This document shows, in pieces, positions 13,326 to 62,443 of a DNA stretch of 64,000 bases. Where the stretch lies: the NCBI GenBank assembly GCA_052426225.1, contig JBNJNM010000006.1, forward strand, positions 2,852,001 to 2,916,000, in the 5' to 3' direction. Each line of letters starts with the position of its first letter. Positions within the stretch are counted from its first letter, which is position 1. Both the position numbers and the translations under genes were made by a program. The notes under the pieces are model-generated. The model was given only the letters and a program-made list of their open reading frames with translations, was not told where the DNA came from and ran no database searches. The stretch comes from Zancudomyces culisetae HAW-14-8. Lineage: Eukaryota; Fungi; Kickxellomycota.

Positions 13326-13332
13326 CTAATTA

Positions 13333-18610: not shown

Positions 18611-18827
18611 ACATTTTTGTCCAAGATATTATTTTTATATATTTAAAATATTCTTTGAAGGGGGGATAATGTCAGAATCGCATTATTTACCCATAAGTTT
18701 TAATATTTATTTTTAATCATATTTAATTACCTTTGAATCCTAACTTGGGAACATTAAGTTTCCCAACTTAAATAAATTAGTTTCCTGACATTCTAACACC
18801 ATATTTTTCACTCTTTACAATCTGAAC

Positions 18828-23111: not shown

Positions 23112-23213
23112 TTCTATAATTTATTTTTAATTAATTTTATTTCTCTTTAGTTTAATAAAGTTAATATTTTTCTTAAATCAAGTTCATTAAATAAAATATA
23201 TCTAGTTCTAACA

Positions 23214-24100
23214 CCTTCTATTTGTTTTTTAACTTTTTTTAGCTGTTTATCTCCGTGTCTGTCCATCTGTCTGGCAAATGGGAGTGCATCCCATGATACC
23301 ATTTTATGCTTGTTTCTAAAGCCGCGTTTTCGCCAATGTGCATTATAAATAATTTGTTTTTGAATTTGTCCAATATACTTTTTAATAATTCGGGAATGTT
23401 ATTATCTTCAATTGATTGATCGATTAATTAATATTAAAAGTCCAGACATCTCCAACTTATCTAATTTTAAGTATTAGTTTAATGTGTTTCTACTCGATAC
23501 GAATCTGTTAATTGTGCGCCATTGTAAAGTTGAAATTTATATATATTAGCATTTTCTTCATACCAACACTTGTTCTATAATCGAAATGAATCTTATGTTC
23601 TATCCAGAAATCAATCCCTATTAACATTCCACATTTAACCCTTCAATAATTATTAACTTAACTTGTCTTATTCTTCGCCAAATGTGATTTCAATATTGAC
23701 CATTTTATCGCATGTAGTTATAACACCGTTTGCCATTCTTGCCTTGACAGGTGTTGAAAGTTCTTCAATTAATCCGAGTTTTTTTGATAACTCATTTGAA
23801 ATAAAACTTGTTGCGCCGGAGTCTAATAGAATTTTTACTCCAATATTGTTTATAATGCCATTACTCATCGGTATATTATCCGTGTTCTGGTTGCCGACAT
23901 CGTACATATTTTAAAATATTTCTTCGAAATTGACCATTTTTTGATCCTCATCGACTGGTAATCTCAGATTCGCCGTTTTTCGAGCAGTTAATTCACTCGT
24001 CCATTGTTTTCGTATTCCTTGTCAGCCCAGTTGTAGTCTGTACTGTCGTCTATACTCGATTGGCTTGTTGATGAATCGCTTTCAATATCGACTAATTTGT
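23214..24100 (-). pseudogene. Degenerate gypsy family E, right part (protease)
   Basis: ORF 23668-23907 ILLDSGATSFIS; contiguous with 11880-13073 across the TSD of B. Confidence 0.75.
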
Positions 24101-34500: not shown

Positions 34501-36121
34501 TTTGTCGGACTTGACCGGGTAGGTCACGTTCTTTGGTCGGGTTTCTGATAGTCAGAAACTCCTGCTTAACTATCTCCCCTAGCTCATGGAAGGGATCCTG
34601 TGACTGTTCCGGTTCTATATCCATATTGGATACTTCTGAACGGTCACTGTCGAAAGAATAGCGTCCCTCATCCTAAATGTTATAAACAATGAGCTGCTTA
34701 TAACTTGGCTTAGAGAATTGTTATGCTTGATTAATGTTTATTTAGGGAGAAGTAAGTATTTAGAAAAATTAATATTTGATGTGTTGATAAATATATATTT
34801 TTCTCTGATGTATCCCAACGGAATTTCGAAGGGTTTATATAATTTTTCATCAGAGAATTTTACTGTGAAGAAAAACTTAAAGTCAATAAATCTTAGCTAT
34901 AAAATTTGACTATGTAAAATTGAACTAGTTTAAGGTATCTACTTATCGTGAAACTTGTAATTTTCATTTGTTGATTTTAACATAGATATGGTTTATCAAT
35001 TTTATCATTGATTTAGTATATCAATTTTAACAATGATTTTGTTCATTGATATTAGCATAGTTTTTGATTATCGATTTTAGCGTTGATTTTGTTTATCGAT
35101 TTTATCATGGTTTTTGTTTATCGATTTTATCATGGTTTTTGTTTATCGATTTTAACATTGATTATATTTATCAATTTTGGCATTGATTTTATATATCAAT
35201 TTTATCATGGATTTGGTTTATCAATTTTATCATGGATTTGGTTTATCAATTTTATCATGAATTTTATTTATCAATTTTATCATGGATTTTGTATATCCAA
35301 TTTTTTAATGGATTTGGTTTATCCAATTTTTTCAAGGATTTTTGTTAAATTTAATTATTGGAAAATTTCTTGATTTTGCTTAGTAAATTTTCCCAATAAT
35401 AAAATCAGAAAATTCATGGTGAAGTTGCAAACATGATTCCAATGTCGGAATGGCATATTAGAAAACCGGAAATGAAATAATAAAATAGGTTAGATTTTTA
35501 GTAGGCCAAAATGTAACTAAAAATTATGTTACAGGAATCGGCCATTCCTAACACTTGAACTGTTGGATGATGGCTGAACGGAGTTGCTGCATCAGACCTG
35601 ACAATGAGATTTTAGTAATGTTTTAATTATATGTTCTTTTACTTATTTAGCCGTAGCACTATTAAACTTTATAAATAAACAGCCTTGTTTAAACGAGTAC
35701 TTTGTTGTTCAACTGTTTTCTTTATTTCCTTATTTTTTTTACTTGTTTCTTAAAACTACTAAAAGAGCTGAGGAATCCTCATTGAGTCTTCCTTCGCTTA
35801 TATATATATACTATTTAGTTTAACCTAATAAAAGCTAATTCAAATAACCTATGTTTCTACGTAATATACTGAGTAGTATCGGATGGTTTCGTTTATCATC
35901 GTTTTCGTATTCTTATTGTTCATTTATTTGAATGTTGATTTCCTATAATCTTTTTTAATTGTATTAATTGTTTTATAATTTTTCTTTGATTATTAATTTT
36001 TTTTCAATTGACTAAATAGTATTGTTGTATTATTGTTCAACTTTAATTTACTTTAGTTGATTATTATGTGGTAAATAAAATGTTATATATAATATTTCGA
36101 GTGAGGTAAAAATATGCGACA
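34500..36121 (-). mobile_element. Copy of the 9758-10510 element, split by an ~875 bp LTR-like insertion (34678-35552, family I)
   Basis: 34500-34677 and 35553-36121 are colinear reverse complements of 9758-10505; the insert has TGTTA...TAACA ends. Confidence 0.65.
34985..35345. repeat. ~21 bp minisatellite (consensus ~TTTATCAATTTTATCATGGAT) inside the family I LTR
   Basis: About 15 or more imperfect tandem units; reverse-complement units also at ~38650-38727. Confidence 0.85.
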
Positions 36122-43755: not shown

Positions 43756-44699
43756 GCAATATCGCAACTAAACATTATTTCACAACAAAACTCACTAGCA
43801 ATAAGGCACCGTACATGGTTATTGGATAAAGGTCCAGAGATTTTAACTGAGTGGGGCGCCGGGAATTGTCACCATATTCTACTTCCCATTGGAACCTAAG
43901 ACCACCCACAGTTCGGACTCCCCTTTATCACTTAACCATTCCGACACAGCAAAAGCTGTTCTTACGCCGAGCTTGAGTTTAAGTGGTGAAATAATATTTA
44001 AACAGCGAATTAAATAATCCGGCCGAAGAAATAATTATTAGAATCGATTTCATTTCGATTTTTGTATGAAAAAACCAAACCCAACAGGAAAATCGATTGT
44101 TTTTATACAACGAACCAAAAAAATTTCCAAATATGGGACATTTGTTGTTCAATTTTTACAAAAAAATTTTTATTTTTTTCACTATTTCCTTAAAGAAATA
44201 ATCAAAAAAAAAAAAAAAAAAAAATTATTTAAAACCTGGGAGAGAGGATAATATAAGGAACTAACCAATAGGAATCATTATCCATTTAATTAGTTAGTAT
44301 ATAAACCTTTACCAAAGCTTACTAGTAAACTTTAAGTCTTTTAATCTCGTTTATTTAGTATCTATACTATTACAATAAAGACAATCATAACAATATTATA
44401 AGAAATAATAATATATAATATTGATAATTTATTAAACAATCTATAAATCCATCATAAACTTGTAATTAAGAAAAATGGTAATATCACTGTTTTAGAACCA
44501 ACAATAAGGTTTTGATAGCAGTGGCATCAGCTACAGGATATTAAGCTTTATCAAGCAAGAGAAGTTATTAATTAAATATTTTATTGAAACGCATGAGTTC
44601 TATTATATACATTTATATTTAATTTAAACAGAAGATTAAAAATTTAAATTAGATGCTAAAAAATTTGATTAATCGTAAAGCTAAACAAATGGAAAACGG

Positions 44700-46685
44700 A
44701 ATATTGGTGAAAATGGTAAAGTTATTTATAGATAAAAGTAAAATATTTAAATATAATTTAGAAAAAAGATTTTAATAACTGGGATGACCTGGAAAAAATG
44801 TAGTTACTAAATTTGTTACAATGTTGTATAGTTAATGTTATAATAACACGAGCCATAAAACAAAACGATTACAAAAGTATTGTGGAATTCGAGAGCAAAC
44901 TTACACATCTCTGGGCTAGTGATAAAATAACTTTTGATGCCACTAAGGTGGTTTAGTTATTAAGTTTAATAGATAACACACTCGGAAGCGTGTGATTGAA
45001 ATAAAATGTAAAGTCTAGGATGAGGTTATAAAAGCCGCACAAAAAGAAACTTTAGTTGAAGTACAACCCTTAAAAAAATGCTCAAGTAGTATCGGCGTTT
45101 ACAAAGTCAACGATATTCAGAAACGCAGTATCGAAGTCGGGTAAACAACTTAAAGCTAAATCCAAAGATACCTTTGCCTATACTCAGCTTGAAAAAGTTT
45201 AATGAGGCAACAGTGAATAATGTTTCTAAGGTTGATGAGGTCGTGGATAAGCATTTGGTAAAAGCTAAAGACAGAAGAAAGTATAATAGTCAGTCACGAA
45301 TAAAGGAGTGTTACATTTGTTAAAATGGGTTTTATATGAAATATGTTAGCCCAACCGAAAGCTACACAAAATCAAATTTACAGCCCTGTGGAAAAGGATA
45401 ATTTTATTAACTTGCTCGACATACCAACAAACGGGAAAAATATTGAGGAAATATATACAATCGAAGATACAAAGTTTGACAATACCTCAGAAAGAAATAC
45501 GAATAGTTATTAGGCAGACCAAGGCTAGAAGAAAACGATACTCATGAACGTCAAGCTGAAAGTACTCAGCGTTATCATAATCTACTAAACAGGAAATATA
45601 GATAACTAACCAAGTCATAAATGCAAATCTAAAAACTTTTTAAAAGTTGTAAAATTAGAAAAAAAGTTTTCTATAATACTTTTTTACAGGATTAGAGGTC
45701 TCGCTGTAACAATTAAATGTATGCATTACACTTTTAAATAATATCGACATTCGCAAATTCAATAAATAATTAAGCCAGATAATAAGGTAACAAACAGTAA
45801 AGTGAGATCCAATATTTTAAATCGACACCTGTGGTCGATTATCGATACAGAGACAGCATGTTGGTTATAACCGCAAGTATGGTGGTAGAATTAGAATTAC
45901 AGGTCCAAGAGCAAACAAGCCGAATGGTAGTGACTGGGTGTCAAAAAACTATTTTATACAAGTTGGGAAACTTAATGTTCTCAAGATAGGATTCAACGGT
46001 TATTAAATATGACTAAAAATTAATATTAAAACTTATGAGTAAATAAGTGTTTTTAACACTGGGCATGATAAAAGGCATTGATAATTGGTGAAAATATAAG
46101 GTGCTCATCTCAAAATTAATAAAGTAGAATTTCTCATCGACCTCGTAGTAATGGATAGAAATGATGACACTCTTATCTTGGGAACCGATTGGATGTTGAG
46201 GCACCAGATTAAGCTAAACATAAAAGCTCAGGAGATGCGTTTACCTATAGAGCAAGCGGGGGTTTCTACAATAGTTTTAACAACTAGTACAAGTCACTAT
46301 ACGAAGAAAAAGCTGAAACATACCTTGTTGTAAAGAACCCATCAAACGTAACAGAGATAACTGAATTCTTAATGTTTAACGAGGTACTTGACCATTATAA
46401 AGATATATTTGTAAATGTCATTTCACAGATAAATAGTACCTAGGTTACTGAGATTAAAATTGAATTGATCGAAGTGAAGCCAATAAAACCAATGCAGTGC
46501 CGCATTTCGCATATGATGCTATTGATGTTAGATTGGAGCTATCAGAAATGGAAAAGCAGGGTGTTTTATCACCATGTGTATCAGAATCGTATTCCCCTAT
46601 TGTTTTAGTTTATAAAAAGAATGGTAAGATGAGGGTATGTGTTGATTATAGAAAAATATATCTGATAAAAAGAAAAGATACTTAC
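44700..46685 (+). pseudogene. Degenerate gypsy family J paralog (gag remnant, protease, RT start)
   Basis: MDRNDDTLILGTDWML, SPIVLVYKKNGKMRVCVDYR; colinear with 26200-28350. Confidence 0.75.
45939..46058 (-). repeat. Old diverged solo LTR of family A
   Basis: aagttgggaaacttaatgttc...ggattcaa core matches the A LTR; TSD CTGGG on both sides. Confidence 0.9.
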
Positions 46686-48132: not shown

Positions 48133-49695
48133 CAGTGAGTTTCAAAAATGTCTCAAAATAATGAAAATTTTTAATAGTGTAATATCTCGCTCAATATTAT
48201 CCAAAAATTATAAGTTTTTTATAATATATAATGCACAAATGTTATATGTTAATTTTATATAAACTGTAAATTAATTGGATAAAAATTCATTATGAAATTA
48301 TAAATTGAAAAAATTTTAAAAATGAGACAATTTTGGGAAATTTTCAAAAAAAAAATTTAAACTATCATAACTTTATGAATTCAAATTTTAAATTTTTAAA
48401 CTTTCACATATAATAATATATATAATTGTTATACTAATCAAAATAATAATTTTTTAAAAAATGATATCTGAACAACGTAAACTGGATATTAAAAACGCGT
48501 TACTTGAAGGCAGAAGCATTGACCAAATCATTATAGATAATGGAGTTAGTAAAGCAACAATATACAGAATTAAAGCAGCAATGAATATCAATTTACCGGC
48601 TAATAAACGCGGTCGTCCAGCGAAGCTTTCACCCCAAAGCAAGCGAATATGTACTAGGATGATATTATCTGGAGAGTATCGATCTGCTACTTCGATACAA
48701 AAGAAGTTAGAAATGGATAATGTTGTTAGTGCTAGTAAGTCTACAATATATAGGGCTTTTAATGATCTGAAAGCCGTTGCAAAAAAGAAGGCATCCAAAC
48801 CGAAACTGAGACTTAAAAATATAGCAAAAAGGTTATGATTCGCAAAATATCATCACCAATGGACTACTGATGATTGGAGACGAGTAATTTGGTCCGACGA
48901 AACTAAAATCAACCGATTTGGATCTGATGGAAATGAATGGACTTGGGTTCGTGATGGTGTGAGTCTACAGCCGCACAATATTAACCAGACCGTAAAACAC
49001 GGTGGAGGATCATTAATGATTTGGGGATGCATCACAGCATTTGGAACTGGCTACATGTGCCGAATAGTAGGAATGTTAAACAAGGAAGATTATTTAAACA
49101 TTTTAAAAGACGAGCTTAGCAATACAATAAAGTACTACAAGTTGGATCCCAAGTCAATAATATTTCAACATGACAATGATCCTAAACATACCTCAAAGTT
49201 AGTTACATGCTGGCTTGAAAACCAGGAATATAATACATTGGACTGGCCGCCACAATCTCCAGACTTAAACCCAATCGAAACTATATGGGCAATCATCAAA
49301 AGACGCCTAAATAGATACAGTAAACCTCCGTCCGGGATGATCGAATTATGGGAGCGAATAGAAACGGAATGGAATTTAATATCAGTGGAAACTATACTTG
49401 GTCTTATAGATAGTATGTCCAAAACCGTTGAGGCAGTTATCAAGTCTAAAGGATGGTGGACAGAATTTTAAAGTTTTTTTTTGAAAAATTCCCAAAATTG
49501 TCTCATTTTTAAAATTTTTTCAATTTATAATTTTATAATGATTTTATAACCAATAATAATACTAATTATATTAATAATATTATACCAATTGTGCATTAAT
49601 AATATAAAAAATATCTAATTTCTGGATATTATTGAGCGAGATATTACACTTTGAAAATTATTATCATTATTTTGAGACATTTTTGAAACTCACTG
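48133..49695 (+). mobile_element. Tc1-family DNA transposon 1 (DD34E), ~220 bp TIRs, TA TSD
   Basis: TA|CAGTGAGTTTCAAAAATGTCTC ... GAGACATTTTTGAAACTCACTG|TA. Confidence 0.95.
48461..49471 (+). pseudogene. Tc1 transposase with one in-frame TGA (48836-48838)
   Basis: HTH-GRP, WSDETK, QHDNDPKH, SPDLNPIE with 34 residues between D and E; both ORF halves are in the same frame. Confidence 0.92.
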
Positions 49696-50988
49696 TATTT
49701 ATAATTTTAAACTGCTAAATAATACTCCTAATGAATATACCTTTAAAATAATAATCTCAATATTTTATTTAGTTCTATATAGAAAAAATCCGTAGATAAA
49801 TAAAACTAAACTAGAACTTTTATAATATTAAATATACTAATATTAAATCATAACAGATCTATTTTTGGATATGCATGAACATGTATAAAATTAATAAATC
49901 AAGCTAAATTAATTTGTTTGTTAATCCCATAGGGTCTAGGAGCGATCACTGCCACCTTATAACAATATAAATATAGTTTTGAAGTAATGATATCGGTATT
50001 CTAACCAGAATATTTCAGGGTTGTGTAAACTAAACCAAGGTGTTCCTAGTATAAATTTGGATGAGCACTGATTATTAGATCAAAAAAGTTCACTTCGGTG
50101 TAGTAGTCGCAAGAGTTCATGTCAGCGGAGATGTTTTTATTGATATTGTTCCTGAAAGTAGGTTCTACTATCTACCGATTCTGCAGGTATTGCCTGGGTT
50201 TTTTAAGTAGTGTGAATAGAATGGTTGCCTGCAAACTTAATGTTCATAATATTCTTGGTGGCAACTAAATCAATTAAATCAATTATATTATTTTATTCGG
50301 AAATTGACAATAATATTTTGATGAATATGTGGTATTTACAATTAAGTATCAATGATGTTCCAGGTAAGTTAACTGATATTATGGAAAAATCTAGTAAGCT
50401 ATTAATATTGCTTAGTGTATTGTCCAGATGTGAGCCTTCATACGTACTTGGATATTTGCTTTTCCCCTGGAAAATTCTGTTATCTGGCCAGGCCACAACT
50501 AAATGTCGTTATTTTCGCAGTAAACACAATGTTCTAATCTTGGTCGTCTTTCTATATCTTGGTTTATTACTAATTTTTGTAACAAGTCCACCATAATTGA
50601 ATACTCTGTAAAAATATTCATTAAATACTGTGATCTGTTGCTTTGTTCTCATTGGATAATGTGAAGTTTAATGCATGATTTGTGCATTATCATAATTGAT
50701 AATCTTCATTCGAGTGATGTTTGAACAATAAGTATTCTAATAAATAGGATGTTATCTTGCTGATCTTGTTCATAATGGGGCAGCATTATTGTTAGGAATG
50801 GTAAATTCAGGATAATAATTATTGTTTAAACTATATTTAATAATAATGTCTACCAAATAAAATAGTTCATTTTCAGATTTTCACATTATCAAATCGAAGT
50901 AAAATCAAGTTTGTAAAATTTAAAAAGTATTACTACAATATTTGTCGTGAATATTAAAAAATTATATTTAAGAAAATATCCAGATATA

Positions 50989-52603
50989 CAGTGACTCAAA
51001 AAATTGTTCAAATGTTTTAGATGTTCATTAAAAAAACATTATATCTGACGAATACTATATCGTATCACTATAAAATTTACAATCATTATACATCCATATA
51101 CCATGAATTACCTATCAAATTTTTAGAATACTTGAACCAGCCAATCAACTGTAGTTATACTTTTTGTAAGAATATTTTATTTGAACAATTTTTTTGCTAA
51201 TAATAAAAAAATTTATAAACTTAATTAATCTAGTATTTTGTATATCCACTCCTGGCTTTCAATACTGCATTAATTCTTGATGGCATGCAAATGATTAGCG
51301 ACATACACTCGTCACGTGTTATCTTATTCCACTCGTCTTGTACGCGGTCCCAAAGTTCGTTCATCCCTTTAGGTGCATTTTCGTGATCTGACAGCCGTCT
51401 TTTCAAACTGACCCATAGATGTTCAATTGGATTTAGGTCAGGTGACTGTGCTGACCAGTCAAGCACCTGAATTGAGTTAGTTTGCAAGCTTTCTTTAGTA
51501 ATTTTCGCGGTGTGTTTTGGATCGTTATCATGCTGAAAAATTGTACTTTCCCTGTCTAAGTCGTACCACTCCATTGATTTTACCAGTTCGTCTTCAAGAA
51601 TATCACAGTACAATTCTGCATTAAGTCAGAAATCAATTATAGTGCGATATCCTGGGCCTTCTGAAGTCATGCATCCCCATATCATGATTGAACCTCCACC
51701 ATGTTTTATAGTTTTTTTAACATGGTTCGGTTTTAACTGGCTCCGTTGTTTTTTTCAGCACCACATGCGCCCATCTGACCCAAATCTGTTAATTTTAGTC
51801 TCGTCTGGCCATATCACACGTTGCCAGTCTTCTACAGTCCAATGCTGATATTTTTTAGCAAATGCAAGTCGTTGTTTAATATGGCCTAATTTTAGCATAG
51901 GTTTTTTGACCTTAGGTTTTGCACTTAAACCATTTCTATTTAAGCTATTTCGCACATTTTGAGGAACCACAGTTACGATGCCATTATCCTTGAGAAATTT
52001 TGTAGAGTCTGTCGCTGTATCAAATTGCCCAGACGTAATTTTCCGAATTATTAATCGCTCATTAGCTTTTGTCAATTTATTTGGGCTGCCAGGTGATAAT
52101 TTTTTTATTGATGGACGATACTTTTTTTTTATGTTAGATATTGTCCCTTTACTAATAGATAGTTTAGATGCAATTTGGCTATATGAGTATCCATTATCCA
52201 GCAGATTTATAACACTCCAAACTTTTTCATTATTTAGTATTTTCATCGTATTTAAATTGATCAAAAATTTATATTTCTAAACTAAAATTTATTGAGTAGA
52301 TAATTGTGAATTATAACTAGTAACATATATATTTTTATAATGATAGCTAACATTATGAAAAAGATATCATCAAAATTGATAATATTAATTTAAAGCAAAA
52401 AAATTGTTCAAATAAAAAATTTTTACAAAAAGTATAACTACAGTTGATTGGCTGGTTCAAGTATTCTAAAAATTTGATAGGTTATACATGGTATATGGAT
52501 GTATAATGATTGTAAAATTTATAGGGTTACGATATAGTATTCGTCAGATATAATGTTTTTTTAATGAACATCTAAAACATTTGAACAATTTTTTGAGTCA
52601 CTG
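50989..52603 (-). mobile_element. Tc1-family DNA transposon 2 (DD34E), ~210 bp TIRs, TA TSD
   Basis: TA|CAGTGACTCAAAAAATTGTTC ... GAACAATTTTTTGAGTCACTG|TA. Confidence 0.95.
51230..52264 (-). pseudogene. Tc1 transposase with in-frame TGA stops (51755-57 and ~51627)
   Basis: WPDETK, QHDNDPKH, SPDLNPIE; ORF pieces in one frame; the 10518 copy has TGG at the first stop. Confidence 0.9.
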
Positions 52604-53239
52604 TATAAAATATCTAATTTTGATTCTATAAAGTGATTAAATGTATTACATTATCATATTCAGAACTATAAGATAAGGCAAAATCGCGATTTATGCTAAT
52701 TTTTACAAATTATTAATTTATATGTAATATTTGCAATAACTTGGTATATCAATAATATGTTATTATAAGATAATCTAAAACTATGATAAATTGTATACAC
52801 TAATATATGATAAGATGGATAATAATATTTGTTAAAATCAACAAATAAAAATATTAATTTTCTCTTTAATCAGATAATTTAATCTCGTTAGATTATACAT
52901 ATCAAATTTTTAAATCTAAATTTATGACTTTAAGTTTTATCCATAGCAAAAATCAGTGTTGAAAATATTTCAAAGCATTCGTAATTATGTTGGGCATCAT
53001 ACAAAAATTATATATATTTAACACTTTTAATATTATAATATTCTAAAAAATATTTTTAAAATATTAAATTTATACTCACTACTCTCAGATTTAAACTGAT
53101 CATTATTTGTTAAATATTTTGAATACTGTATAATTACATTGATTTAGTCTTATATAAATTTTAAACTTATACTTGATGACACAATATTAAAATGTTAAGA
53201 TATCATTATAGTTAGTGATTATTGATCAAAGAAGTAGTA

Positions 53240-53851: not shown

Positions 53852-54529
53852 TTCTAGGTATGATCTCCATTCTTTAAAAGCCTCAATTATGGCTAACATT
53901 TCTTTATCGTAAATTTCGTAGTTGATTTCAGCAGGTTGTAACTTTCTGGAATAATATGCTTTAGGATGAAAATTATTATTATCGTTGCGTTGTGATATAA
54001 CTCCTCCAATTGCGAAGTCTGATGCATCAGTTTCAATAGTAATTGATTTATTCGGATCAAAATATTTTATTATAGGTGCAGTTGTAAATGCTTTTTTAAA
54101 TTGATCGAAAGAGTTTTGTGCTTCAGTGCTCCAGCTCCATTTTTCATATTTTGTAACAATTTTGTTCTATGTGTCACAATCTTTATAAAATTCATTATAA
54201 ATTTCTATAGAAATTTGCAAAACCAAGGAACGTTTGAATTTCTTTTATTGAGGTTGGTGCAGGCCATGTACTTACAGCTATTGTCTTTGTTTTATCCATA
54301 CTTACCCCTTTATCGATAACAATTATCCTAAGAATTCGACTTCTGCTTTTGTCAGGAAACTAATTTATTTAAGTTGGGAAACTTAATGTTCCCAAGTTAG
54401 GATTCAAAGGTAATTAAATATGATTAAAAATAAATATTAAAACTTATGGGTAAATAATGCGATTCTGACATTATCCCCCCTTCAAAGAATATTTTAAATA
54501 TATAAAAATAATATCTTGGACAAAAATGT

Positions 54530-54796
54530 GAGCTTATAGTCGAGTGGCTAAGGCGTCGAACTTGTATTCTGCAGGACCCTGGTTCGATCCTTCGCTGTAA
54601 GACCGTAATTGGGAAGTAATTAGCTGTAGAGTGGATGTGATGTTTCACGGGGCCAATGTGCGCGATAACGTCCTTCGGGACTAGTACCGGACCGTTTCAC
54701 CTCTCCGATAACTCCTTCGGGATCTCGAGCAGTTAATTCGAATCACGTGATTGTGTGGCCCAAGACGTTAGCGCCCTCCTAAGTTCATTCTTTTTT
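54530..54796 (+). ncRNA. Putative Pol III-transcribed tRNA-derived structured RNA, antisense within A2
   Basis: A box 54537-54547, B box GGTTCGATCC 54581-54590, UUCG hairpins 54670-81 and 54713-22, T6 at 54791-96. Confidence 0.6.
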
Positions 54797-54911
54797 ATTT
54801 TTTCTTTTATAATTTTTTATGCTTTTTAGTAGTTTTTAGGTTGTTTTTATAGTTTTTTTTGATAAGTATTTAGGTATAATATTGGTTAAATAATAAAATA
54901 TAATGTTGCTC

Positions 54912-57900
54912 TTATGGTTTGTTGTGATATGTCTTATAGTATTTTTTCAATAGTTGAGGCGCGTTTATGTTTTCAATCGGCTCCCAGCTTCTTTCACTTA
55001 TATCAAAGCCTTTCCAATCAACTAAGTAATATTTTTTACCCCGTACAAGCTTAGAATCCAAAATAGCCTTAACTTCATATTCTTTATTTCCATTTATAAT
55101 TAGGGGTGGAGGAGGACTGTCTATTAATCTGCGGTTACTGCTGGGTTCGATATACGGTTCCAATAACGAGACATGAAATGTGTTATGGATTTTCATTGAT
55201 GGCGGGAGGTCTAAACGGACAGAAACAGGATTGATAATTTTAGAGATGGTGAAAGGTCCTAGAAGTCTATGGTCAAACTTTTTAGAAGGCCTTTGAGTTT
55301 TGATATTTTGGCTGGATAGCCAAACCTTGTCACCTAGTTTATACTTTGGATGTTCAGATCGGTTTACATCAGCATACTTTTTATATTCCTGAGATTTCTT
55401 GTTAAGTATGGAAGTGAGGGCTGATTGAAGTTCTTTGAGTTGTTTTATCCTATCAGAAGCGCTGGGGACGTGAACGTTTTTAGTGATTTGAGGATCAAAT
55501 CTTGGATGGTAACCATATAGAGCAAAGAAAGGAGAAGTATTAGTGCTGGAGTGGAGAGTGTTGTTATAAGCAAATTCGGCAATTGGGAGCAGTTCAAACC
55601 AATTATCTTGCTGATAGTTGATGAAACAGCGTAGATACTGTTCCAATGTTTGATTCACCCGCTCCGTTTGACCGTCTGTCTCTGGATGAAAGGCTGTAGA
55701 CATCCTAGTATCAACTTTGAGCAGTTTGAATAGTGAACTCCAAAATTTGGACGAGAATTGGGTTCCACGGTCTGAGATTATGACGTCTGGAAGTCCATGA
55801 AGCTTGAATACATGTGTGAAAAAGGCGGAGGCAGTTTCTTCTGAGGATGGCAGCTTCTTAAGCGGGATGAAATGGCTCATTTTAGTGAACCTGTCTACCA
55901 CTACCATAATAGTAGTGTGCTTGTTGGATGGAGGAAGATCAGTTATGAAATCCATGGTGATAGATTTCCATGGGCCTGAGGGAGCGGGTAGCGGAAGTAG
56001 TTTACCGTAAACTTTGTGTCTTCTGTCCTTTGATCTATTGCATGTATCACAGGTTTGAACAAACTCTTTAATAAATTTGCGCATTCCTGGAAACCAAAAC
56101 TCTCGTTCCACGAGCTCCAATGTCTTCTTAGCACCAAAATGACCGGCTGGGCCACTGTCATGTCTAGAACTTACAACTTGCGGCTTCATTTTGTCGGGGA
56201 CGACAACACGGTTTCCAAGCATTACAATCCCATCTTCAACTTCTACTGGCTCGTTAGACTTATGGCTGCTCTGGTATCTTGCGGCATCCAATAATCCTTC
56301 TAGATGGGCTTTGCTGGATTTGGCGATTTCTTGAGCAAAATCACTGTCCACTATGCTAATAATGTCTATGAAGTGGTCTTCGCCTATGATGTTGTTGTTG
56401 GCGACCTTATCAGGTGTGTGATTGGGTAAACGAGAAAGAGCGTCAGGTTTGCCTCCTTGAGATCCAGGCCTGTAGGTTATGATGAAGCTGAATCTACTGA
56501 GATCAAGTGACCACCTTGCGTGTCTTCTGTTGAGTGACTTCAGATTTTTAAAGGTCTCCAGATTCTTATGGTCAGTAAGAATCTTGAACGGGATGGAGGA
56601 GCCTTCCAGATGATGTCGCCATTCTTTGAGAGCCTTGATGATTGCCAAAAGTTCCTTGTCATAGATATTATAGTTGGATTCGGCAGTGTTGAGTTTGTAA
56701 GAGTAGTAGGCACAAGGACGGAGATCACCGTTTTCATCCTCTTGGGACAGAGCAGCCCCAATGGCGTAGTCTGAGGCGTCAGTTTCCAGAATAAACTGTT
56801 TTCCTGGGTCAGGGTATCTGAGAACGGGGGAAGTGGTGAGATCCTGGATAAGAGTATTAAAGGCTTCACCTGCCTCCTTACTCCAAACGAACGGTGTATC
56901 CTTTTTCAGAAGTCTTGTGATTGGCAGGGCTTTCAGCGAGAAGTATGGGATAAACTTTCGGTAGTAATTGGCAAAACCGAGAAACTTCTGGACCTCCTTG
57001 ACATTGGTGGGTGGTAGCCATTCCTTTACACACTTGACTTTAGCAGGATCGGTGGCTATTCCATCTGAAGACACAACATGGCCTAGAAATTCAACTTCCC
57101 TGATATGGAAGTGACATTTTTCGGCGTTACAGTACAGACCATTTTCAAGCAGCTTTTTCAGAACAGATTTCACGTGAGAGATGTGAGTGTCAGTGTCATT
57201 GGAAAATATCAAGATGTCGTCAAGGTATGCAATTGCATAGAGATCCAATACATCTCGTAACACATCATTGATAAAGTGCTGAAAGGTGGCAGGAGCATTT
57301 GTCAAGCCAAATGGCATGACCTGGTACTCAAAGTGGCCATATCTGCACCTAAATGCAGTTTTCCACTCGTCACCTTCCTTGATCCGCACCAAGTTGTAGG
57401 CACCTTTGAGATCCAATTTTGTAAAGACCTTGGCTGTACGCAGCCGATCGAACGCCTCATCAATCCTAGGTAATGGGTACCTATTCTTGATGGTAGCTTC
57501 GTTCAATCGGCGGTAGTCAACACAAAGGCGCAAGTCACCAGACTTCTTCTTTACAAACATGATTGGTGCACCAGCAGGGGAGACAGAGCGTCTGATGAAG
57601 CCATTGGTGAGGTTTTCGCGGATGTAACCTCTTAGAGACTCTAACTCTACTTCAGATAGCGGGTATATTGGCCCCCAGTATGGGGTGTAACCCTCTTTGG
57701 TGTTGACAGGACAGTCATAACGGCGGTGAGGAGGAAGTGAAACGGCAGACTTGGGATTGAACACTTCCTTGAATTCAGAGTATATTACTGGAAGTTGCGG
57801 AAATTCTTCCAAGTACTCTAGTGGGGACTCAGAAACGGCAAAAGTTACAGGATCTGGATCCAAGGAATATTCTGGCTCGGGGGTGGTGACTGGGGTATTT

Positions 57901-58871
57901 TTATGAAATGGCCGGGATCTGACGACTGGTTCTCTTGGCTCAATTTTCTTCAGGATTGCTTTGGGAAGTTCAGGTCTGAGTGGTACTTTTGGCACAGGGG
58001 TTACTGGACGACGGGGCTCAGGAATTTGCTTGACAACATGGTTATCTACTGGGTTCTCAATAGCTGCGGGTTTGGGCAAACTTTGGGTTTCAGGTTCTGG
58101 AGTGACTGATTGGACTGGTGCAGGAACAGGAACAGGAACAGGAAGAATCTCTTCAATTCTGGCGTATGGATTTGACGGAGCTGGGCTGGGGAGATCAGGA
58201 GACGGAGGCGGTGAAAATCTTTGATTTTCAGTGTTTGAATCGTCCAACTTGACCGATTCGAGCAACTTGGCACTGTGTGGAAGCAGGGTAGTTGATAATC
58301 TATTCAACACCCTTTGGAGGATAGTTGAGTTTGTGGACGTATTCTGGCTAATATTTTGTTCTACTGGATCTGGATCTGGTTCATCAGGTGACTTGAACAC
58401 GGCCTGGATGGAGTGGGTATCAACACAATTTGTACTGCAAAAGTCAGAGTCGAAGTGGATCTGGAGGTCTGGCCAAGTTATACTAGGATTGTGTTTGCGT
58501 AACCAGGGTAATCCAAAAATAATGTCAGCGTGATTGGTTGGAATCGGGATAAGGTCTAGGTATTCAGAGTGGTTAGGACCGGACTTGATATGGGCATTAT
58601 CAACCTTGACATTTATGCCCCCTGGGTATATCTGGTGACCATCAACACTTTCTAGGACGATGGTTTTTTCTGCTTCTTTGGTTGGGAGGTTTAGTTTTTC
58701 TAATAAATCTTGACGAATAAAGTTGGCTGAAGCACCGGAGTCCACTAATGCAACAAGTTCGTGTAGATTATTTAAAACAACTTTAATATGAAATTTATTA
58801 CTAGAAATATTAGAATTATTTGCTACGCTCAGGAGTAACTCCCGGACTACATCTGAGCACTGTCTTTTGGC
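54912..58871 (-). CDS. pol: Pol of A2 (PR-RT-RH-IN-chromodomain), intact, probably expressed by -1 frameshift from gag
   Basis: 1277+ aa open frame with all catalytic motifs; 5' boundary set at the inferred shift site. Confidence 0.93.
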   Translation of the reverse strand, partial: AKRQCSDVVRELLLSVANNSNISSNKFHIKVVLNNLHELVALVDSGASANFIRQDLLEKLNLPTKEAEKTIVLESVDGHQIYPGGINVKVDNAHIKSGPNHSEYLDLIPIPTNHADIIFGLPWLRKHNPSITWPDLQIHFDSDFCSTNCVDTHSIQAVFKSPDEPDPDPVEQNISQNTSTNSTILQRVLNRLSTTLLPHSAKLLESVKLDDSNTENQRFSPPPSPDLPSPAPSNPYARIEEILPVPVPVPAPVQSVTPEPETQSLPKPAAIENPVDNHVVKQIPEPRRPVTPVPKVPLRPELPKAILKKIEPREPVVRSRPFHKNTPVTTPEPEYSLDPDPVTFAVSESPLEYLEEFPQLPVIYSEFKEVFNPKSAVSLPPHRRYDCPVNTKEGYTPYWGPIYPLSEVELESLRGYIRENLTNGFIRRSVSPAGAPIMFVKKKSGDLRLCVDYRRLNEATIKNRYPLPRIDEAFDRLRTAKVFTKLDLKGAYNLVRIKEGDEWKTAFRCRYGHFEYQVMPFGLTNAPATFQHFINDVLRDVLDLYAIAYLDDILIFSNDTDTHISHVKSVLKKLLENGLYCNAEKCHFHIREVEFLGHVVSSDGIATDPAKVKCVKEWLPPTNVKEVQKFLGFANYYRKFIPYFSLKALPITRLLKKDTPFVWSKEAGEAFNTLIQDLTTSPVLRYPDPGKQFILETDASDYAIGAALSQEDENGDLRPCAYYSYKLNTAESNYNIYDKELLAIIKALKEWRHHLEGSSIPFKILTDHKNLETFKNLKSLNRRHARWSLDLSRFSFIITYRPGSQGGKPDALSRLPNHTPDKVANNNIIGEDHFIDIISIVDSDFAQEIAKSSKAHLEGLLDAARYQSSHKSNEPVEVEDGIVMLGNRVVVPDKMKPQVVSSRHDSGPAGHFGAKKTLELVEREFWFPGMRKFIKEFVQTCDTCNRSKDRRHKVYGKLLPLPAPSGPWKSITMDFITDLPPSNKHTTIMVVVDRFTKMSHFIPLKKLPSSEETASAFFTHVFKLHGLPDVIISDRGTQFSSKFWSSLFKLLKVDTRMSTAFHPETDGQTERVNQTLEQYLRCFINYQQDNWFELLPIAEFAYNNTLHSSTNTSPFFALYGYHPRFDPQITKNVHVPSASDRIKQLKELQSALTSILNKKSQEYKKYADVNRSEHPKYKLGDKVWLSSQNIKTQRPSKKFDHRLLGPFTISKIINPVSVRLDLPPSMKIHNTFHVSLLEPYIEPSSNRRLIDSPPPPLIINGNKEYEVKAILDSKLVRGKKYYLVDWKGFDISERSWEPIENINAPQLLKKYYKTYHNKP

Positions 58872-59815
58872 ACCCCAGGTATAGGGGGTCTTGGCCTGCG
58901 GAGCGGACAGTTACGGAGAATGTGGTTCGGCTGACCACAGTATAGACAAAGATTATTGGCTAATCTTCTCTGACGTTCGGCTGTATCTAGCGGTGCTCTT
59001 GGACGGGAGGTGACGGCATCAACGTCCATTGGTTCAGGAGCCTGGTAATCTGGGACAGGCATGGCTGGACGGGGGAAGACCGGTGGAGCCGGAGTACTCC
59101 AGTTGCGGAATGGGACGCTTCTCTTGGGCAGGTAGGCACTGCGGGCATTGATTCTGTTCTCAAGCTCAATCACCTGATCAATGAGCTGGTCCAAGGTGTT
59201 TGGTAGCGGTTCAGTGGCAAGGCGCTGGACAAGGCTAGTATCCAATCCGATGTAAAACAGGTGAATTTTGGCTGGCTCGTTGAATCCACTGAGAGAGGCG
59301 AGGTTTCTGAACTCGGTTGCAAATTCCAGGACGGAACGCTGGGACTGGCGACAACTATGAAGCTGGGTGATAGCTCGGGCTTGGTGGCCAGGATCTGAGA
59401 ATCTCTTTTGAAATTCATTCTCAAACCCTTTGAAATCTGAGAGCAACGGTGATTGGGTATCGATAAGGTTATCGAACCACAGGGCAGCATGACCGGCAAG
59501 GTGAGAACTGATGAACCATATCTTGTTATGGTCACTCTGGAACACGTCTGGTCTGGCCCAGAACTGGCGCTTGATCTCGGCGGTGAAGGCTCGGAACCTT
59601 CCTGATTCTCCTGAGTATTTCTGGATTTCTGGTATTCTGATACCATCAATCCTTGGCTGCGGATTTGGTGCAGGCAAATTCTGCAACTGACTGGGGACTT
59701 GAGCGGGTGTCTGGGCTTGAGCCTGGGCTTGAGCTTGACTATCTTGCAAAGCTTGTTGCATAGCTAATTTTGCGATCTCATCTAATTGGTGGACCATCAT
59801 TAACTCTTCAACCAA
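58847..59815 (-). CDS. gag: Gag of A2
   Basis: Differs from A1 Gag by one residue (H/Y). Confidence 0.93.
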   Translation of the reverse strand: MVEELMMVHQLDEIAKLAMQQALQDSQAQAQAQAQTPAQVPSQLQNLPAPNPQPRIDGIRIPEIQKYSGESGRFRAFTAEIKRQFWARPDVFQSDHNKIWFISSHLAGHAALWFDNLIDTQSPLLSDFKGFENEFQKRFSDPGHQARAITQLHSCRQSQRSVLEFATEFRNLASLSGFNEPAKIHLFYIGLDTSLVQRLATEPLPNTLDQLIDQVIELENRINARSAYLPKRSVPFRNWSTPAPPVFPRPAMPVPDYQAPEPMDVDAVTSRPRAPLDTAERQRRLANNLCLYCGQPNHILRNCPLRRPRPPIPGVPKDSAQM

Positions 59816-62443
59816 TAATTAGAAGTTTCCCAAAATGTCAGGAAACTAATTTATTTAAGTTGGGAAACTTAATGTTCCCAAGTTAGGATTCAAAGGTAAT
59901 TAAATATGATTAAAAATAAATATTAAAACTTATGGGTAAATAATGCGATTCTGACAGCTTTGTGAAATCGACATTTTTCCAGTTTAGCATAAAGTGAATT
60001 ATTCCGGGGTCTTCTTAATATTTCTTTTACATGCTCAATATGGTCTTCTAATATTGTACTATAAACCAGTATATCATCTAAATATACTACTGCAAAACTA
60101 TCTAAGCAGTCTGATAATACATCATTCATGAAACATTGAAACGATGCTGGAGCATTGCAGAATCCGAATGGCATAACTCTATATTTAGAGTGACCGTATC
60201 TCGTACGGAATGCAGTATTCATTCTTCTCCCTTAGCGATTCTTATTAAATTATAAGCGCCTCTTAAATCGATTTTTTAAAATATTTTCGCTTGTCTGAAT
60301 CTGTCGAGTAACTATCCTATTAAAGTTAAAGATACCTGATTTAATTGACAAATATTTAATCCTCTATAATCAACGCATTTTCTTAAAGATCCAACTTTCT
60401 TTTTTACAAAAAGTATAGGAGAGCCAGCTGGAGATGATGAAGGATGAATAAAACCTTTATCTAAATATACTTTCAAATAATCACAAAGTGCTGCAAGTTC
60501 TGTTTCAGATAGTGATTAAATTGGTACAATGGTGGTTGTGAGCCTGGTGTTAACGGAATTTTATGATCATATGTACGATGAGGTGGTAAATTATTAGCTG
60601 CTTTTTCGTCGAATACAATATAAATTCAGAATATTGCGATGGTATAATAGTTATTTCTGATATTTCTGATATTAATGTGCAAGTTATTGTGTGTGTAGAA
60701 CATTGATTTTGTTGTTTACTACAATTATTTTGGCAATATTCTGATATGAAATACAACTTATCTAAATTCCCCTATGTGTATTTTATGGGTTCTCAGCCAG
60801 TTTATTCCAATAATTACAGGGTATTTTCCCAATTTGGTTAAATCAAATGATATAGTTTTGTGATGATTATAAGTGTTATGTTGAATAGGTATTGTATTGT
60901 GTGTTATGGAGTCTGACGAAATTAATCTTCCGTCAATTACTAGTAGCGGAATTGGTAATTTTTTTAATACTAATGGTATGTTATTAGTCTTGGCAAAAGT
61001 AGAATCAATGAAGCAATTAGTTGCACCCGAATCAATCATGGCAACGGTTTATATCGGGGTATTGTTTACCCGAAGGGTTACTGATACTATAAGGTGCGCG
61101 TTAACTTTATTTGTTGACATATTTAAATGTTCCAGGTCAAGATTCTTATTAATTGTGGAATTAATTTTTAAGTTGCAGTCAGGTATAGATTCAGGCTTGA
61201 GTTCAGGCTTAAGTTCAGGTTTTGAGTGTAGTACGGGTTTAGTTTTAATTATAAGTTCAGATTTGATTTCAGGTTTAAGTTCAGTATTAAGTTCAGGTTT
61301 GACTTCAGATTTGGTTTCATGTATATTTTCAGAGTTATAGTTGGATTAGTAGAATGTATCTTTTACATTTAATTCAAGTGTTAGATTGGTTATTTCAGTA
61401 GTGTATATTTTATTGTATATTGTAAAGGTAGATTTACTTCAGATTAATATAAACTTCCGGATGTTTCATTAGCGGCAATAATTAAAAGGTATATATTTTT
61501 GGTTGAAGTGGACGGTTTAGGATAATTAGATACGCTCAAGACTACGTCCGAAAATTGTCTTGAGCTTAATTGTTTTCCTTAATAATACTTGCAGATATAG
61601 TATTTGGTACCTTTATTTGCGGGCGACGAGGACAAGATGAAATGACATGATCTGGATTACCACAGTATAGACAAAGATTAAGGTCGCGGCGGCGTTGTTT
61701 TTCAGTCTGAGTGAGTGGTGGGCGACGAGATGAAGCTATGTCAATTTCCATTTGTTGCACCCGAGGCTGTGTTATGTTTATTAAATTGTTGATTGATGGT
61801 GTAGAGTTATCCAAATTTTGCATGTGCATTGGGCGAGGGCAAAACGTTTTTTCAAGGTTTCTATCAAATAGTCTATTGTCAATTTTTATGGCGAGGTCAA
61901 TAAATTCTGAAAAGTTGTCAGGTCTATCTAAACGGGCTAATAAATCCTTAATGTCTTTTTTAAGTCATTCATAAAATTGGCTACAGAGTGCTGCGTCATG
62001 CCAGGAAATAAGTGTGGAAATACGACAAAATTCTGTAGCATAAGTGGCTGCGGATCCCAACTGGTGAAGTTTTCTGAGTTGACGTTCAGCTGTCAAAGAT
62101 TGGTGTGGATTTCCGAAAACAGATAAAGTTCGTTTATGAAAATGTCAAAATTTTCCAGGATTGGTTCATGATCATTAGATTCTAGTAACGGTTGTAACCA
62201 CGAGAAAGCAGGTCCACGAAGGAAAGTAGAAGCAAAAATGACTTTCTGAGTATCTGTTGAAGATCTTGAGGGTTGAGCTTGTATGACTAATTGGACTTGT
62301 GCTACAAAGATTCTTTGTTGGTATCTATTGCCACTAAAGTATTCAGGATCTGCTACTCTTGGTGCTCTAGCCACTGGTAACACGTTTGCTTGATTATTTC
62401 TTAACATATTTAAGCGGAGCTGAAGATCGTCTAATTGGGTTGC

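Follow-up and report, generated by a model that had tools for sequence, protein, structure and literature searches.

An antisense, tRNA-related module with putative Pol III signals in the 3' UTR of a Ty3/gypsy chromovirus

Results

Two copies of a self-priming chromovirus

The window (the whole 64-kb stretch of DNA analysed) contains two copies of Family A (Table 1). This Ty3/gypsy chromovirus is complete, measures 5.6 kb, primes itself in the manner of Tf1, and has LTRs of 121 bp and target-site duplications of 5 bp. Searches against Pfam assigned gag, protease, RT, RNase H, integrase, a Tf2-type SH3 domain (SH3_Tf2-1, E = 1e-20) and a chromodomain (Chromo, E = 4e-13) to its proteins, and this domain set, the C-terminal position of the chromodomain, the LTRs and the target-site duplications identify Family A as a chromovirus. 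All four LTRs are identical across the two copies; a repeat match of 124 nt consisted of the 121-bp LTR and three flanking bases that are alike by chance. The primer-binding site TTGGGAAACTT is an 11/11 complement of the LTR-internal AAGTTTCCCAA (59860-59870 and 54374-54384), an arrangement which, with a presumed transcript start, places Family A in the Tf1/sushi self-priming group. While pol is intact in copy 2, its frame is broken near 17490 in copy 1, which itself sits within the 5' LTR of a Family B element, also a chromovirus. Between the copies, pol showed pS of 4.75% and pN of 0.46%, and gag showed pS of 1.9%: the two copies have diverged under purifying selection. Both are young copies of a chromovirus of fungal type.

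Table 1. Coordinates of Family A, its island and the signals of the island in the window
Feature	Position	Strand	Remarks
Family A copy 1	13192-18790	+	
Copy 1 LTRs	13192-13312 and 18670-18790	+	
Copy 1 target-site duplication TTCTA	13187-13191 and 18791-18795		
Island, copy 1	18344-18610	-	one base different from copy 2
Family A copy 2	54350-59956	-	complete chromovirus
Copy 2 LTRs	54350-54470 (3' LTR) and 59836-59956	-	
Copy 2 target-site duplication AAAGC	54345-54349 and 59957-59961		
Polypurine tract GAAGGGGGGATAA	54471-54483	-	adjoins 3' LTR 54350-54470
TATA-like motif TATATAAA	54499-54506	+	-31 to -24 of putative start
Island, copy 2	54530-54796	+	267-nt GC-rich non-coding module, putative type-2 Pol III unit
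Decayed tRNA-like head	54530-54604	+	acceptor, anticodon and T stems only partly paired
Box A-like motif TAGTCGAGTGG	54537-54547	+	+8 to +18 from putative start 54530; 1 mismatch to consensus
Box B-like motif GGTTCGATCCT	54581-54591	+	+52 to +62; 1 mismatch to consensus
Body domain	54650-54761	+	closed by GGGCCA (54650-54655)/TGGCCC (54756-54761)
Internal direct repeat unit 1 (CGATAAC-G-TCCTTCGGGA)	54663-54680	+	contains first UUCG hairpin
Internal direct repeat unit 2 (CGATAAC-TCCTTCGGGA)	54706-54722	+	contains second UUCG hairpin
T6 run, putative Pol III terminator	54791-54796	+	first T4-or-longer run on strand
A-rich linker of Family A 3' UTR	54797-54911	-	between pol stop and island
pol, copy 2	54912-58745	-	intact; stop at 54912
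gag, copy 2	58847-59800	-	
Self-priming primer-binding site TTGGGAAACTT	59823-59833	-	2 nt past 5' LTR

A GC-rich island between pol and the polypurine tract

The stretch from the pol stop to the polypurine tract holds an island with sharp GC boundaries, whose GC content is 50-57% (54540-54780) against 15-25% in the flanks, and which has an open frame in none of the six reading frames. Because copy 2 has its gag and pol on the minus strand, the tRNA-like strand of the island is antisense to gag-pol. The sole difference between the two island copies is found at 54752 (T, against C at position 18388 of copy 1). Both copies of Family A carry the island and each, with a target-site duplication of its own (TTCTA, AAAGC), integrated independently, which supports the view that the island is an inherited part of Family A. 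The preliminary description of this DNA had reported a GC-rich island of about 265 nt in an AT-rich UTR, antisense to gag-pol, with a second copy at 18610-18344 that differed by one base, and all of this was borne out, the length being 267 nt. Other Family A-like sequence in the window amounts to a solo LTR, with no "empty-site" relative that lacks the island. In a related family, a conserved accessory ORF of 115-117 aa, to which the island is unrelated, occupies the same slot; therefore, we regard the region between pol and the polypurine tract as a place where accessory modules accumulate.

A tRNA-related head

When the head of the island was aligned with 25 real tRNAs, tRNA-Asn(GUU) was closest and tRNA-Thr(UGU) next, with z = 7.8 against shuffles (0/500 shuffles reached the observed score), while the reverse complement, used as the control, stayed at the null level. 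Moreover, blastn with the head matched 11 phage records, of which 8 were annotated tRNA-Asn genes aligned in register, and the head aligned end to end with two real tRNA-Asn genes. Judged by this similarity, the first ~75 nt of the island descend from a class I tRNA, nearest to Asn-GUU, that no longer has a tRNA fold. A functional tRNA gene was rejected: ARAGORN found 0 tRNA genes in the island and only noise at relaxed thresholds; the Rfam tRNA model matched nothing in the island, whether at the gathering score or, on 701 nt and on 101 nt, at E <= 10; by eye, about 3/5 pairs are left in the anticodon and T stems; and the MFE fold of the head, which has no excess stability either, is not a cloverleaf. 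Thus the tRNA-like start that had been read on the antisense strand stands, as does the verdict that it is not a tRNA.

The resemblance to tRNA may be read from the other strand, namely that the sense strand of the genomic RNA anneals to a host tRNA, much like the 3' half of the bipartite primer-binding site described for Ty3. Family A would offer about 75 nt of sense RNA complementary to a tRNA-like sequence, not far from U3 and the polypurine tract at the 3' end of its genome. However, Family A self-primes through its 11-nt LTR complement and uses no tRNA primer, on which ground a bipartite primer-binding site was rejected; the other 190 nt of the island would be left unexplained; and the head has decayed from a foldable tRNA, so that a duplex with an actual tRNA of the host would have gaps. 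We therefore consider a tRNA-binding site highly improbable.

Pol III promoter and terminator signals

The box A-like and box B-like motifs start 44 nt from each other. Nowhere in the window except in the two copies of the island do boxes A and B stand together at the spacing of a tRNA gene, and the same stringency yielded one occurrence outside the island in ~1.5 Mb of related retroelement strand. The T6 run is the only T4-or-longer run of the island, which also has no A4 run, and further T runs follow downstream to 54911; the absence of an internal T4 counts for little, because about one would be expected by chance in 267 nt. TATA-like boxes of Pol III genes with boxes A and B have been reported at a position that matches the -31/-24 motif seen here (PMC10137851), though its weight is small since the upstream stretch is ~80% A+T. 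With box A and box B at the canonical positions (near +8 to +19 and near +52 to +62), a spacing within 30-60 nt and a terminal oligo-T, all on the antisense strand, the island has the sequence make-up of a candidate type-2 Pol III gene. The tRNA-like spacing of the boxes, the lack of T4 and the end at TTTTTT were points on which the preliminary description proved accurate.

If the island were a random GC-rich remnant with no feature at all, its likeness to a tRNA would be accidental; this would be consistent with the failure of the Rfam tRNA model to match and with the lack of excess folding energy. It is disfavoured and barely credible in view of the z of 7.8 for the match to real tRNAs, which the reverse complement did not reproduce, the A+B box pair that is unique to the island in the window and nearly so in the ~1.5 Mb control strand, and the significant internal repeat described below.

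The body: an internal repeat without excess folding stability

Downstream of the head, GTCCTTCGGGAC is located at 54670-54681 and TCCTTCGGGA at 54713-54722 of the plus strand, and both belong to an internal direct repeat of 18 nt (17/18 identical), whose score was reached by 1/200 shuffles. GTTTCAC stands upstream of each unit, at 54642-54648 for unit 1 and 54694-54700 for unit 2. The GGGCCA/TGGCCC helix that closes the body was predicted on both strands. In the plus-strand MFE, which leaves out the UUCG hairpins, the variable base 54752 (U/C) pairs with G, and the substitution is predicted to turn a G-U into a G-C pair in the antisense strand.

The stability of these folds was no better than that of dinucleotide shuffles: z was +0.3 for the whole island, and for the body -0.6 antisense and -1.5 sense, neither of which is significant. 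Rfam returned no family for the island, neither at the gathering score over the whole window nor at E <= 10 on 701, 201 and 101 nt, and no C/D or H/ACA boxes were visible by eye in the body. These results change the earlier picture of a structured RNA, which was not upheld since the MFE is at shuffle level on both strands. Its enclosing GGGCCA/TGGCCC stem is present with a predicted helix, and its two UUCG hairpins exist as sequences but are not independent features, both being contained in one 18-nt repeat; the Rfam search that it named as a check was run in nested lengths and gave no island match.

The repeat and the folds also bear on the possibility that the island acts on the sense strand as a cis element of the retrotransposon RNA or DNA, for export, packaging, stability or 3'-end processing or as two protein-binding sites made by the internal repeat, with the antisense tRNA-like reading being a relic of its origin. 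The slot between pol and the polypurine tract is that of retroviral CTE/DR-type elements and also holds the accessory ORF of the related family; the 18-nt repeat with GTTTCAC before each unit is significant; the body folds slightly better in sense than in antisense; and the island seems to be constrained (see below). On the other hand, the sense-strand z of -1.5 falls short of significance, Rfam returned no cis-element for the island, and its long-range complementarity to the 5' leader, as 5'-3' cyclisation would have, was not beyond chance. A sense-strand element would further leave the complete, in-register set of Pol III signals on the opposite strand unexplained, and we consider it improbable.

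Insertion signature and searches in relatives

Around the island, only AT-rich chance matches of at most 8 nt at implausible positions were found in the search for a target-site duplication. The island has no A-rich or simple-repeat 3' tail on its own strand, which runs into a T-rich stretch that is the A-rich linker on the Family A sense strand. A solo LTR or Helenus-type insertion was rejected, as no TG...CA ends with a 5-bp duplication surround the island. The preliminary description had also seen neither A-tail nor target-site duplication, and its observation holds, but its conclusion that the island is not an inserted SINE is not established: a SINE that was old or had inserted atypically would no longer show its duplication, and a tRNA-like head, a body and a Pol III terminator together constitute SINE architecture.

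Among 101 related chromovirus loci, none had the island sequence or an A+B box pair in the 3' UTR, so we take the island to be an acquisition of Family A; this is in line with the earlier statement that no such module was known in fungal chromoviruses. In the closest relative (L001/L002), the 3' UTR contains an antisense B box without mismatch, at the pol end and not at the polypurine tract end; it was rejected as a related module, having no A box and no similarity to the island, and is ascribed to chance because one such match is expected among ~80 elements. Free-standing or diverged copies of the island were absent from the TE-dense 64-kb window, even with purine/pyrimidine-collapsed matching (nothing above shuffles). 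Exact island patterns were found neither in viral contigs (two patterns) nor in metagenomes (one pattern). Searches with Family A pol and with its C-terminal 250 aa gave no match above 56% identity, the relatives of pol in viral contigs were at 36-45% identity only, and exact look-up of ten window proteins found 0 in the collection. The two-hairpin pattern had one exact match, in DNA of a Poseidoniales archaeon that looks coding; it was taken as chance because the linker and flanks are unrelated, and a prokaryotic origin was rejected.

These observations raise the reading that the island is passive cargo, i.e., a tRNA-derived SINE or similar Pol III retroposon that landed antisense in the 3' UTR of the master copy and has no function, while perhaps still being transcribed. 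A tRNA-related head, an unrelated body and a Pol III terminator in 267 nt are the standard architecture of a SINE, the GC boundaries are sharp, and the absence of the module from related chromoviruses fits a one-off insertion. The antisense orientation is the one usually tolerated within transcribed DNA, and the island has it. SINE insertion into LTR elements has, in addition, been proposed as the origin of Cassandra, Helenus and Ajax (PMC10886601), which provides a precedent. Against passive cargo are the lack of a target-site duplication, of a tail and of any free-standing or diverged copy in the window, and the extreme compactness of Family A otherwise, with its 121-bp LTRs.

Divergence of the island between the copies

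Between the two copies, which are the only ones available for the comparison and whose islands are ~99.6% identical, the island differs at 1/267 nt (0.4%), against 4.75% for pol synonymous sites and ~6% for the linker (7 differences/114 nt), the most divergent stretch between the Family A copies. Taking the pol pS as the rate, we estimate a Poisson probability of ~4e-5 for at most one island difference; with the gag pS, the estimate is ~0.04. Further, the island holds 50-57% GC while the neighbouring UTR has drifted to 15-25%. The low divergence thus suggests constraint, with the element lineage keeping the island under selection. However, divergence is also low in the entire 3' terminal 480 nt and in a 628-nt stretch of gag, so recombination between co-packaged RNAs could mimic constraint on the island.

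Both the low divergence and the GC content maintained amid AT drift speak against passive cargo, for which recombination could account for the former; on balance we regard cargo of no function as doubtful.

Discussion

Our tentative reading, to which we assign a probability of roughly 0.45, is that a Pol III unit, SINE-like and derived from a tRNA, became lodged in reverse in the 3' UTR of a Family A ancestor as the present island and would since have been copied along with Family A at each retrotransposition. TFIIIC would bind box B, and Pol III would start near 54530 and end at the T6 run. The putative product would be an RNA of ~265 nt that could pair along its whole length with the 3' UTR of all Family A transcripts, immediately before the polypurine tract. 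Its most likely effect would be antisense pairing with genomic RNA, which could lead to RNAi/heterochromatin or to damped expression of the element itself; TFIIIC occupancy may be a by-product or a second function. The roles put forward in the preliminary description, an RNAi/Dicer decoy, an antisense copy-number regulator and a TFIIIC chromatin barrier, are hypothetical. The further-reaching proposal, in which an autonomous chromovirus would own a Pol III gene for a ~265-nt antisense RNA that is kept by selection and regulates the element or its chromatin, whether through copy-number control by dsRNA/RNAi, nucleation of chromodomain-targeted heterochromatin or a TFIIIC boundary, is, as we judge it, rather unlikely.

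SINEs have Pol III promoters, as do TRIMp3 elements, which are small and non-autonomous and have them in their LTRs, and a few retroviruses, which use them to make microRNAs. The island is like tRNA-derived SINEs (SINE2 type) in its decayed tRNA head with boxes A and B, its unrelated body, its length of ~270 nt and its putative Pol III terminator, and differs from them in having no target-site duplication, no tail and no dispersed copies within the 64-kb window; such SINEs move through a LINE, whereas the island moves inside an autonomous LTR element. TRIMp3 comprises Cassandra (5S), Helenus (tRNA) and Ajax (5S), with Helenus found in fungi with 5-bp target-site duplications, and in these non-autonomous elements of under 1.3 kb the promoter is inside the LTRs, in sense, and is thought to drive their own short template RNA (PMC10886601). 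In Family A, by contrast, the module is internal (3' UTR) and antisense in an autonomous 5.6-kb element. Boxes A and B were not found in the 121-bp LTR; with the island between pol and the polypurine tract and gag and pol encoded, Family A was not classed as TRIMp3.

Bovine leukemia virus (BLV) and simian and bovine foamy viruses possess microRNA units transcribed by Pol III (PMC4267658, PMC3993851). The likeness consists in an independent Pol III unit, putative for the island, that is embedded in the 3' region or LTR of a reverse-transcribing element, and these retroviruses obtain their small RNA while the genomic RNA stays uncut. Their units are in sense and form pre-microRNA hairpins or dumbbells of ~55-120 nt, whereas the island is antisense with UUCG hairpins of only 3-4 bp; a retroviral-type microRNA unit was rejected on this orientation and on predicted folds without a long (~20 bp) hairpin. 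The preliminary description, which named adenovirus VA RNAs, gammaherpesvirus tRNA-miRNA RNAs and Cassandra as precedents, had passed over the closest ones among retroelements, namely these BLV and foamy virus units and, within TRIMp3, Helenus and Ajax.

A tRNA-like leader is also found in Pol III genes such as the tRNA-miRNA units of gammaherpesvirus 68, plant tRNA-snoRNA dicistrons and the yeast RPR1 leader. There, boxes A and B of an unrelated downstream RNA come from a tRNA-like part at the 5' end, as they would in the island, but in those genes the tRNA-like part mostly folds and is processed, whereas the stems of the island are broken.

If a functional Pol III unit is confirmed, no accessory gene of this kind would have been described before in an LTR retrotransposon that is autonomous; it would be an antisense counterpart of the BLV and foamy virus units and would show such elements carrying regulatory cargo in a new way. 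It would offer a tractable case in which an element makes RNA complementary to its own sequence with a polymerase that heterochromatin silences poorly, and would bear on the persistence of heterochromatin-targeting chromoviruses in TE graveyards and on TRIMp3-type origins. If the island were only a hitch-hiking SINE, it would still document the first step of a TRIMp3-type route, a SINE captured in an active LTR element.

Compared with chromoviruses of the Tf1/sushi group, Family A has the same domain set and the 11-nt self-priming primer-binding site, and differs from them by its unusually short LTRs (121 bp) and by the antisense island.

Organization of Family A and its island

The window consists of AT-rich (about 22-35% GC) stacked transposons, including several Ty3/gypsy elements and Tc1/mariner remnants, and holds only one host-like ORF. 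When the element ends were read directly, both copies of Family A proved to be complete LTR retrotransposons, inverted relative to each other and ~99% identical, with LTRs of 121 bp rather than 124 bp. Pfam domains for gag, protease, RT, RNase H, integrase, a Tf2-type SH3 domain and a chromodomain were found, and Family A is therefore a chromovirus. Its polypurine tract, GAAGGGGGGATAA, directly adjoins the 3' LTR, and its primer-binding site, TTGGGAAACTT, is a perfect 11-nt complement of the LTR-internal AAGTTTCCCAA (59860-59870, 54374-54384), with the same arrangement near 13315-13325 in copy 1. As read from these matches, this is a Tf1/sushi-type self-priming arrangement, so that no tRNA primer would be involved, and the complementarity implies that transcription starts at AAGTTTCCCAA, which would leave an R-U5 of only ~35 nt. 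L001, a relative (Logan contig), is arranged alike but uses another 11-mer.

The island, antisense to gag-pol, has a GC content of 50-57% within 54540-54780 vs 15-25% on either side, which bears out the preliminary description of a GC-rich island in an AT-rich UTR; its two copies do differ by one base, as had been counted by eye, and all listed motif positions were found. No open frame was present among its reading frames. The terminal T6 is the sole run of T4 or longer on the + strand, again as described, and a search of the flanks agreed that no target-site duplication surrounds the island.

Coordinates of features in the window and in the comparison loci (L-numbers)
Feature	Position	Strand	Remarks
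Family A copy 1	13192-18790	+	target-site duplication TTCTA
Family A copy 2	54350-59956	-	target-site duplication AAAGC
Family A LTRs	13192-13312, 18670-18790, 54350-54470, 59836-59956		121 bp, TGTCAG...CTGACA
Family A primer-binding site	59823-59833	-	11 nt, 2 nt past 5' LTR
Family A 3' UTR			440 nt: 115-nt A-rich linker after pol stop, 267-nt island, 46-nt AT-rich spacer before polypurine tract
Family C (chromovirus) 3' UTR	43756-44240	+	~470 nt
Conserved extra ORF	L003:4947-5294, L085:5160-5513, L086:3957-4310		115-117 aa, between pol and polypurine tract
Solo LTR, Family A-related subfamily	45939-46060	-	89% identical; flanking 5-bp duplication CCCAG
Host-like ORF	3708-5831	-	707 aa, no Pfam domain
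Tandem array	34941-35369		25-bp unit repeated some 17 times or more, 60-79% identity
Tc1/mariner-type transposase fragments	48959-49471, 51755-52264	+, -	DDE_3, HTH_Tnp_Tc3_2
Inverted repeat pair	50985-51207 / 52385-52607		223 nt, surrounds one Tc1/mariner-type transposase fragment

A tRNA-derived head with Pol III signals

The head (the first ~75 nt of the island) had been said to start like a tRNA without being one, and both halves of this claim held. ARAGORN found no tRNA gene in it, and the Rfam tRNA model gave no match, also when a 101-nt slice was searched at E <= 10. A blastn comparison with phage genomes returned 11 records, in 8 of which the hit is to an annotated tRNA-Asn gene and covers the anticodon arm through the T loop in register, and two phage tRNA-Asn genes align with the head end to end. 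In a panel of 25 annotated tRNAs, all from one phage cluster, Asn(gtt) and Thr(tgt) scored best (z = 7.8 vs shuffled heads, 0/500 shuffles reaching the observed score), and the reverse-complement control scored at the null. The head is thus derived from a tRNA, though not a tRNA itself. That it serves as a site for tRNA annealing is very improbable, because Family A primes itself.

Box A (+8 to +18) and box B (+52 to +62, tRNA numbering) are each one mismatch from consensus, and only about 3/5 pairs are left in the stems; boxes kept and stems decayed is the pattern typical of SINE heads. Within the window, an A+B pair at tRNA spacing occurs only in the two island copies, and beyond the island the same stringency yielded one pair, outside any element, in ~1.5 Mb of strand (101 related loci). 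Upstream, at -31/-24 relative to the putative start, is a TATA-like TATATAAA, weak evidence in a stretch of 80% A+T; TATA-like boxes have been reported at the same position in the 4.5S genes of rodents, where boxes A and B are in use too (PMC10137851).

On the best-supported reading, to which we give a probability of about 0.45, the island would be a Pol III unit of SINE-like make and tRNA origin that was caught in the 3' UTR in antisense orientation and moves with the element. The preliminary interpretation as an element-encoded Pol III RNA is partly supported at the level of sequence signals, the evidence base being only two near-identical copies. The island is like a SINE in its head and body, but has neither the flanking duplication nor the tail of one. 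The main rival tells the same story of origin and denies selection, the island being passive cargo; this ordinary explanation, a carried SINE-like insert, is still alive, although we consider it rather unlikely, since the target-site duplication and tail are missing and free copies are absent within this window, neither point being decisive.

Body and predicted folding

The 190-nt body matched no Rfam family, nor the rest of the window, nor the related loci. It had been described as carrying two UUCG hairpins; both are present, but they are units of one internal direct repeat (18 nt, 17/18 identical, score matched by 1/200 shuffles) and are to be counted as a single feature. The claim of a structured RNA was not borne out: whole-island folding gave z = +0.3 on each strand, the GGGCCA/TGGCCC-enclosed body gave z = -0.6 on the antisense and -1.5 on the sense strand, and the + strand MFE fold lacks the UUCG hairpins, so unusual stability of an island RNA is unsupported. 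A cis element acting on the sense strand would fit both the location and the internal repeat, but it leaves the in-register Pol III signals unexplained and is distinctly improbable.

An exact search for the two-hairpin pattern hit one contig, from an uncultured Poseidoniales archaeon (L084:7792-7847), where the likeness is limited to two 15-mers, GTCCTTCGGGACTAG and CTCCTTCGGGATCTC, separated by 26 nt. Neither the linker nor the flanks are related to the island, the DNA looks coding, and we regard the hit as coincidence, though the naive expectation is only ~0.02.

Divergence between the two copies

The copies differ by pS 4.75% and pN 0.46% in pol and by pS 1.9% and pN 0.13% in gag, a dN/dS of ~0.1 that reflects purifying selection during divergence. 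Since the coding differences are mostly synonymous, the copies represent two lineages that diverged while active, not mere recent duplicates, yet their four LTRs are identical. The island has 1 difference in 267 nt (0.4%), the A-rich linker beside it 7 in 114 nt (6%), and the spacer, polypurine tract and LTR 0 in 182 nt (0%). About 12-13 island differences are expected at the pol synonymous rate, and by our own Poisson estimate the probability of at most one is ~4e-5 at that rate and ~0.04 if the gag rate is used instead. This is suggestive of constraint on the island, and only suggestive because the differences are patchy (a 628-nt gag stretch holds just one) and retroelement recombination could give both copies the same recent 3' end; the low divergence thus also counts against passive cargo without being decisive. 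The sole substitution changes a predicted G-U pair to G-C on the antisense strand; this fits an antisense RNA, although only one side of the pair has changed.

Relatives and the slot between pol and the polypurine tract

Family A pol, searched at full length and as its C-terminal 250 aa, had no match above 56% identity in the protein collections, and none of ten window proteins looked up there was on record. Among 101 related chromovirus loci, we found neither the island sequence nor an antisense A+B module downstream of pol. The closest pol relative (L001 and L002, 56% identity) has a perfect antisense box B, GGTTCGAGTCC, in its 3' UTR (L001:6125-6165, the same in L002), in the loop of an 8-bp hairpin at the pol end of the UTR, not the polypurine tract end. 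That UTR lacks a box A and is not similar to the island, and this box B is therefore probably due to chance; ~80 elements would yield one by chance.

In L003, L085 and L086, comparison loci of one related chromovirus family, the slot that holds the island in Family A is occupied by an extra ORF that is 89-92% identical among loci, has an arginine-rich N-terminus and contains no Pfam domain. Family B, another chromovirus of the window, has no 3' UTR because its pol/chromodomain frame runs nearly to the polypurine tract, and the ~470-nt 3' UTR of Family C has no Rfam match and no similarity to the island. Taken together, the gap between pol and the polypurine tract is a site of accessory cargo turnover, and the island, on this comparison, is an acquisition specific to Family A. 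The Family C UTR has a moderately GC-richer part (~43800-43990) and a run of >20 A (~44204-44225) just upstream of a purine tract.

Possible consequences and known systems

The sequence shows where the island came from and that its promoter and terminator signals are all present; transcription and any RNA effect we infer. If transcribed, the island would yield an RNA of ~265 nt perfectly complementary to all Family A transcripts in their 3' UTR. Pairing with these transcripts into a duplex would be the most direct outcome, and may lead to RNAi and heterochromatin or to self-limitation; a second possibility is TFIIIC binding at box B.

Like the island, the TRIMp3 elements Cassandra, Helenus and Ajax carry a small-RNA-derived Pol III promoter within an LTR retroelement, but theirs lies within the LTR and points in the sense direction, and the elements are non-autonomous and <1.3 kb long (PMC10886601). 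Among reverse-transcribing elements, BLV and foamy viruses also contain independent Pol III units, which make microRNAs, but these are sense-oriented and encode pre-microRNA hairpins (PMC4267658, PMC3993851). A limited literature search, which does not prove novelty, turned up no described case of an autonomous LTR retrotransposon with an internal Pol III module in antisense orientation.

Other features of the window

Copy 1 of Family A sits in the 5' LTR of Family B, 5 bp from the LTR end (13074-13191 and 18791-23215); Family B, too, has a short LTR (~120 bp). Copy 2 interrupts the RT-coding sequence of an older, AT-rich element. The 707-aa ORF has a single database homologue, a Zancudomyces culisetae hypothetical protein labelled 'transcription factor domain-containing' (51% identical), which hints at a Harpellales-like gut fungus as the source of the window. 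The 223-nt repeat pair and the transposase fragment that it encloses are probably a DNA transposon with terminal inverted repeats.
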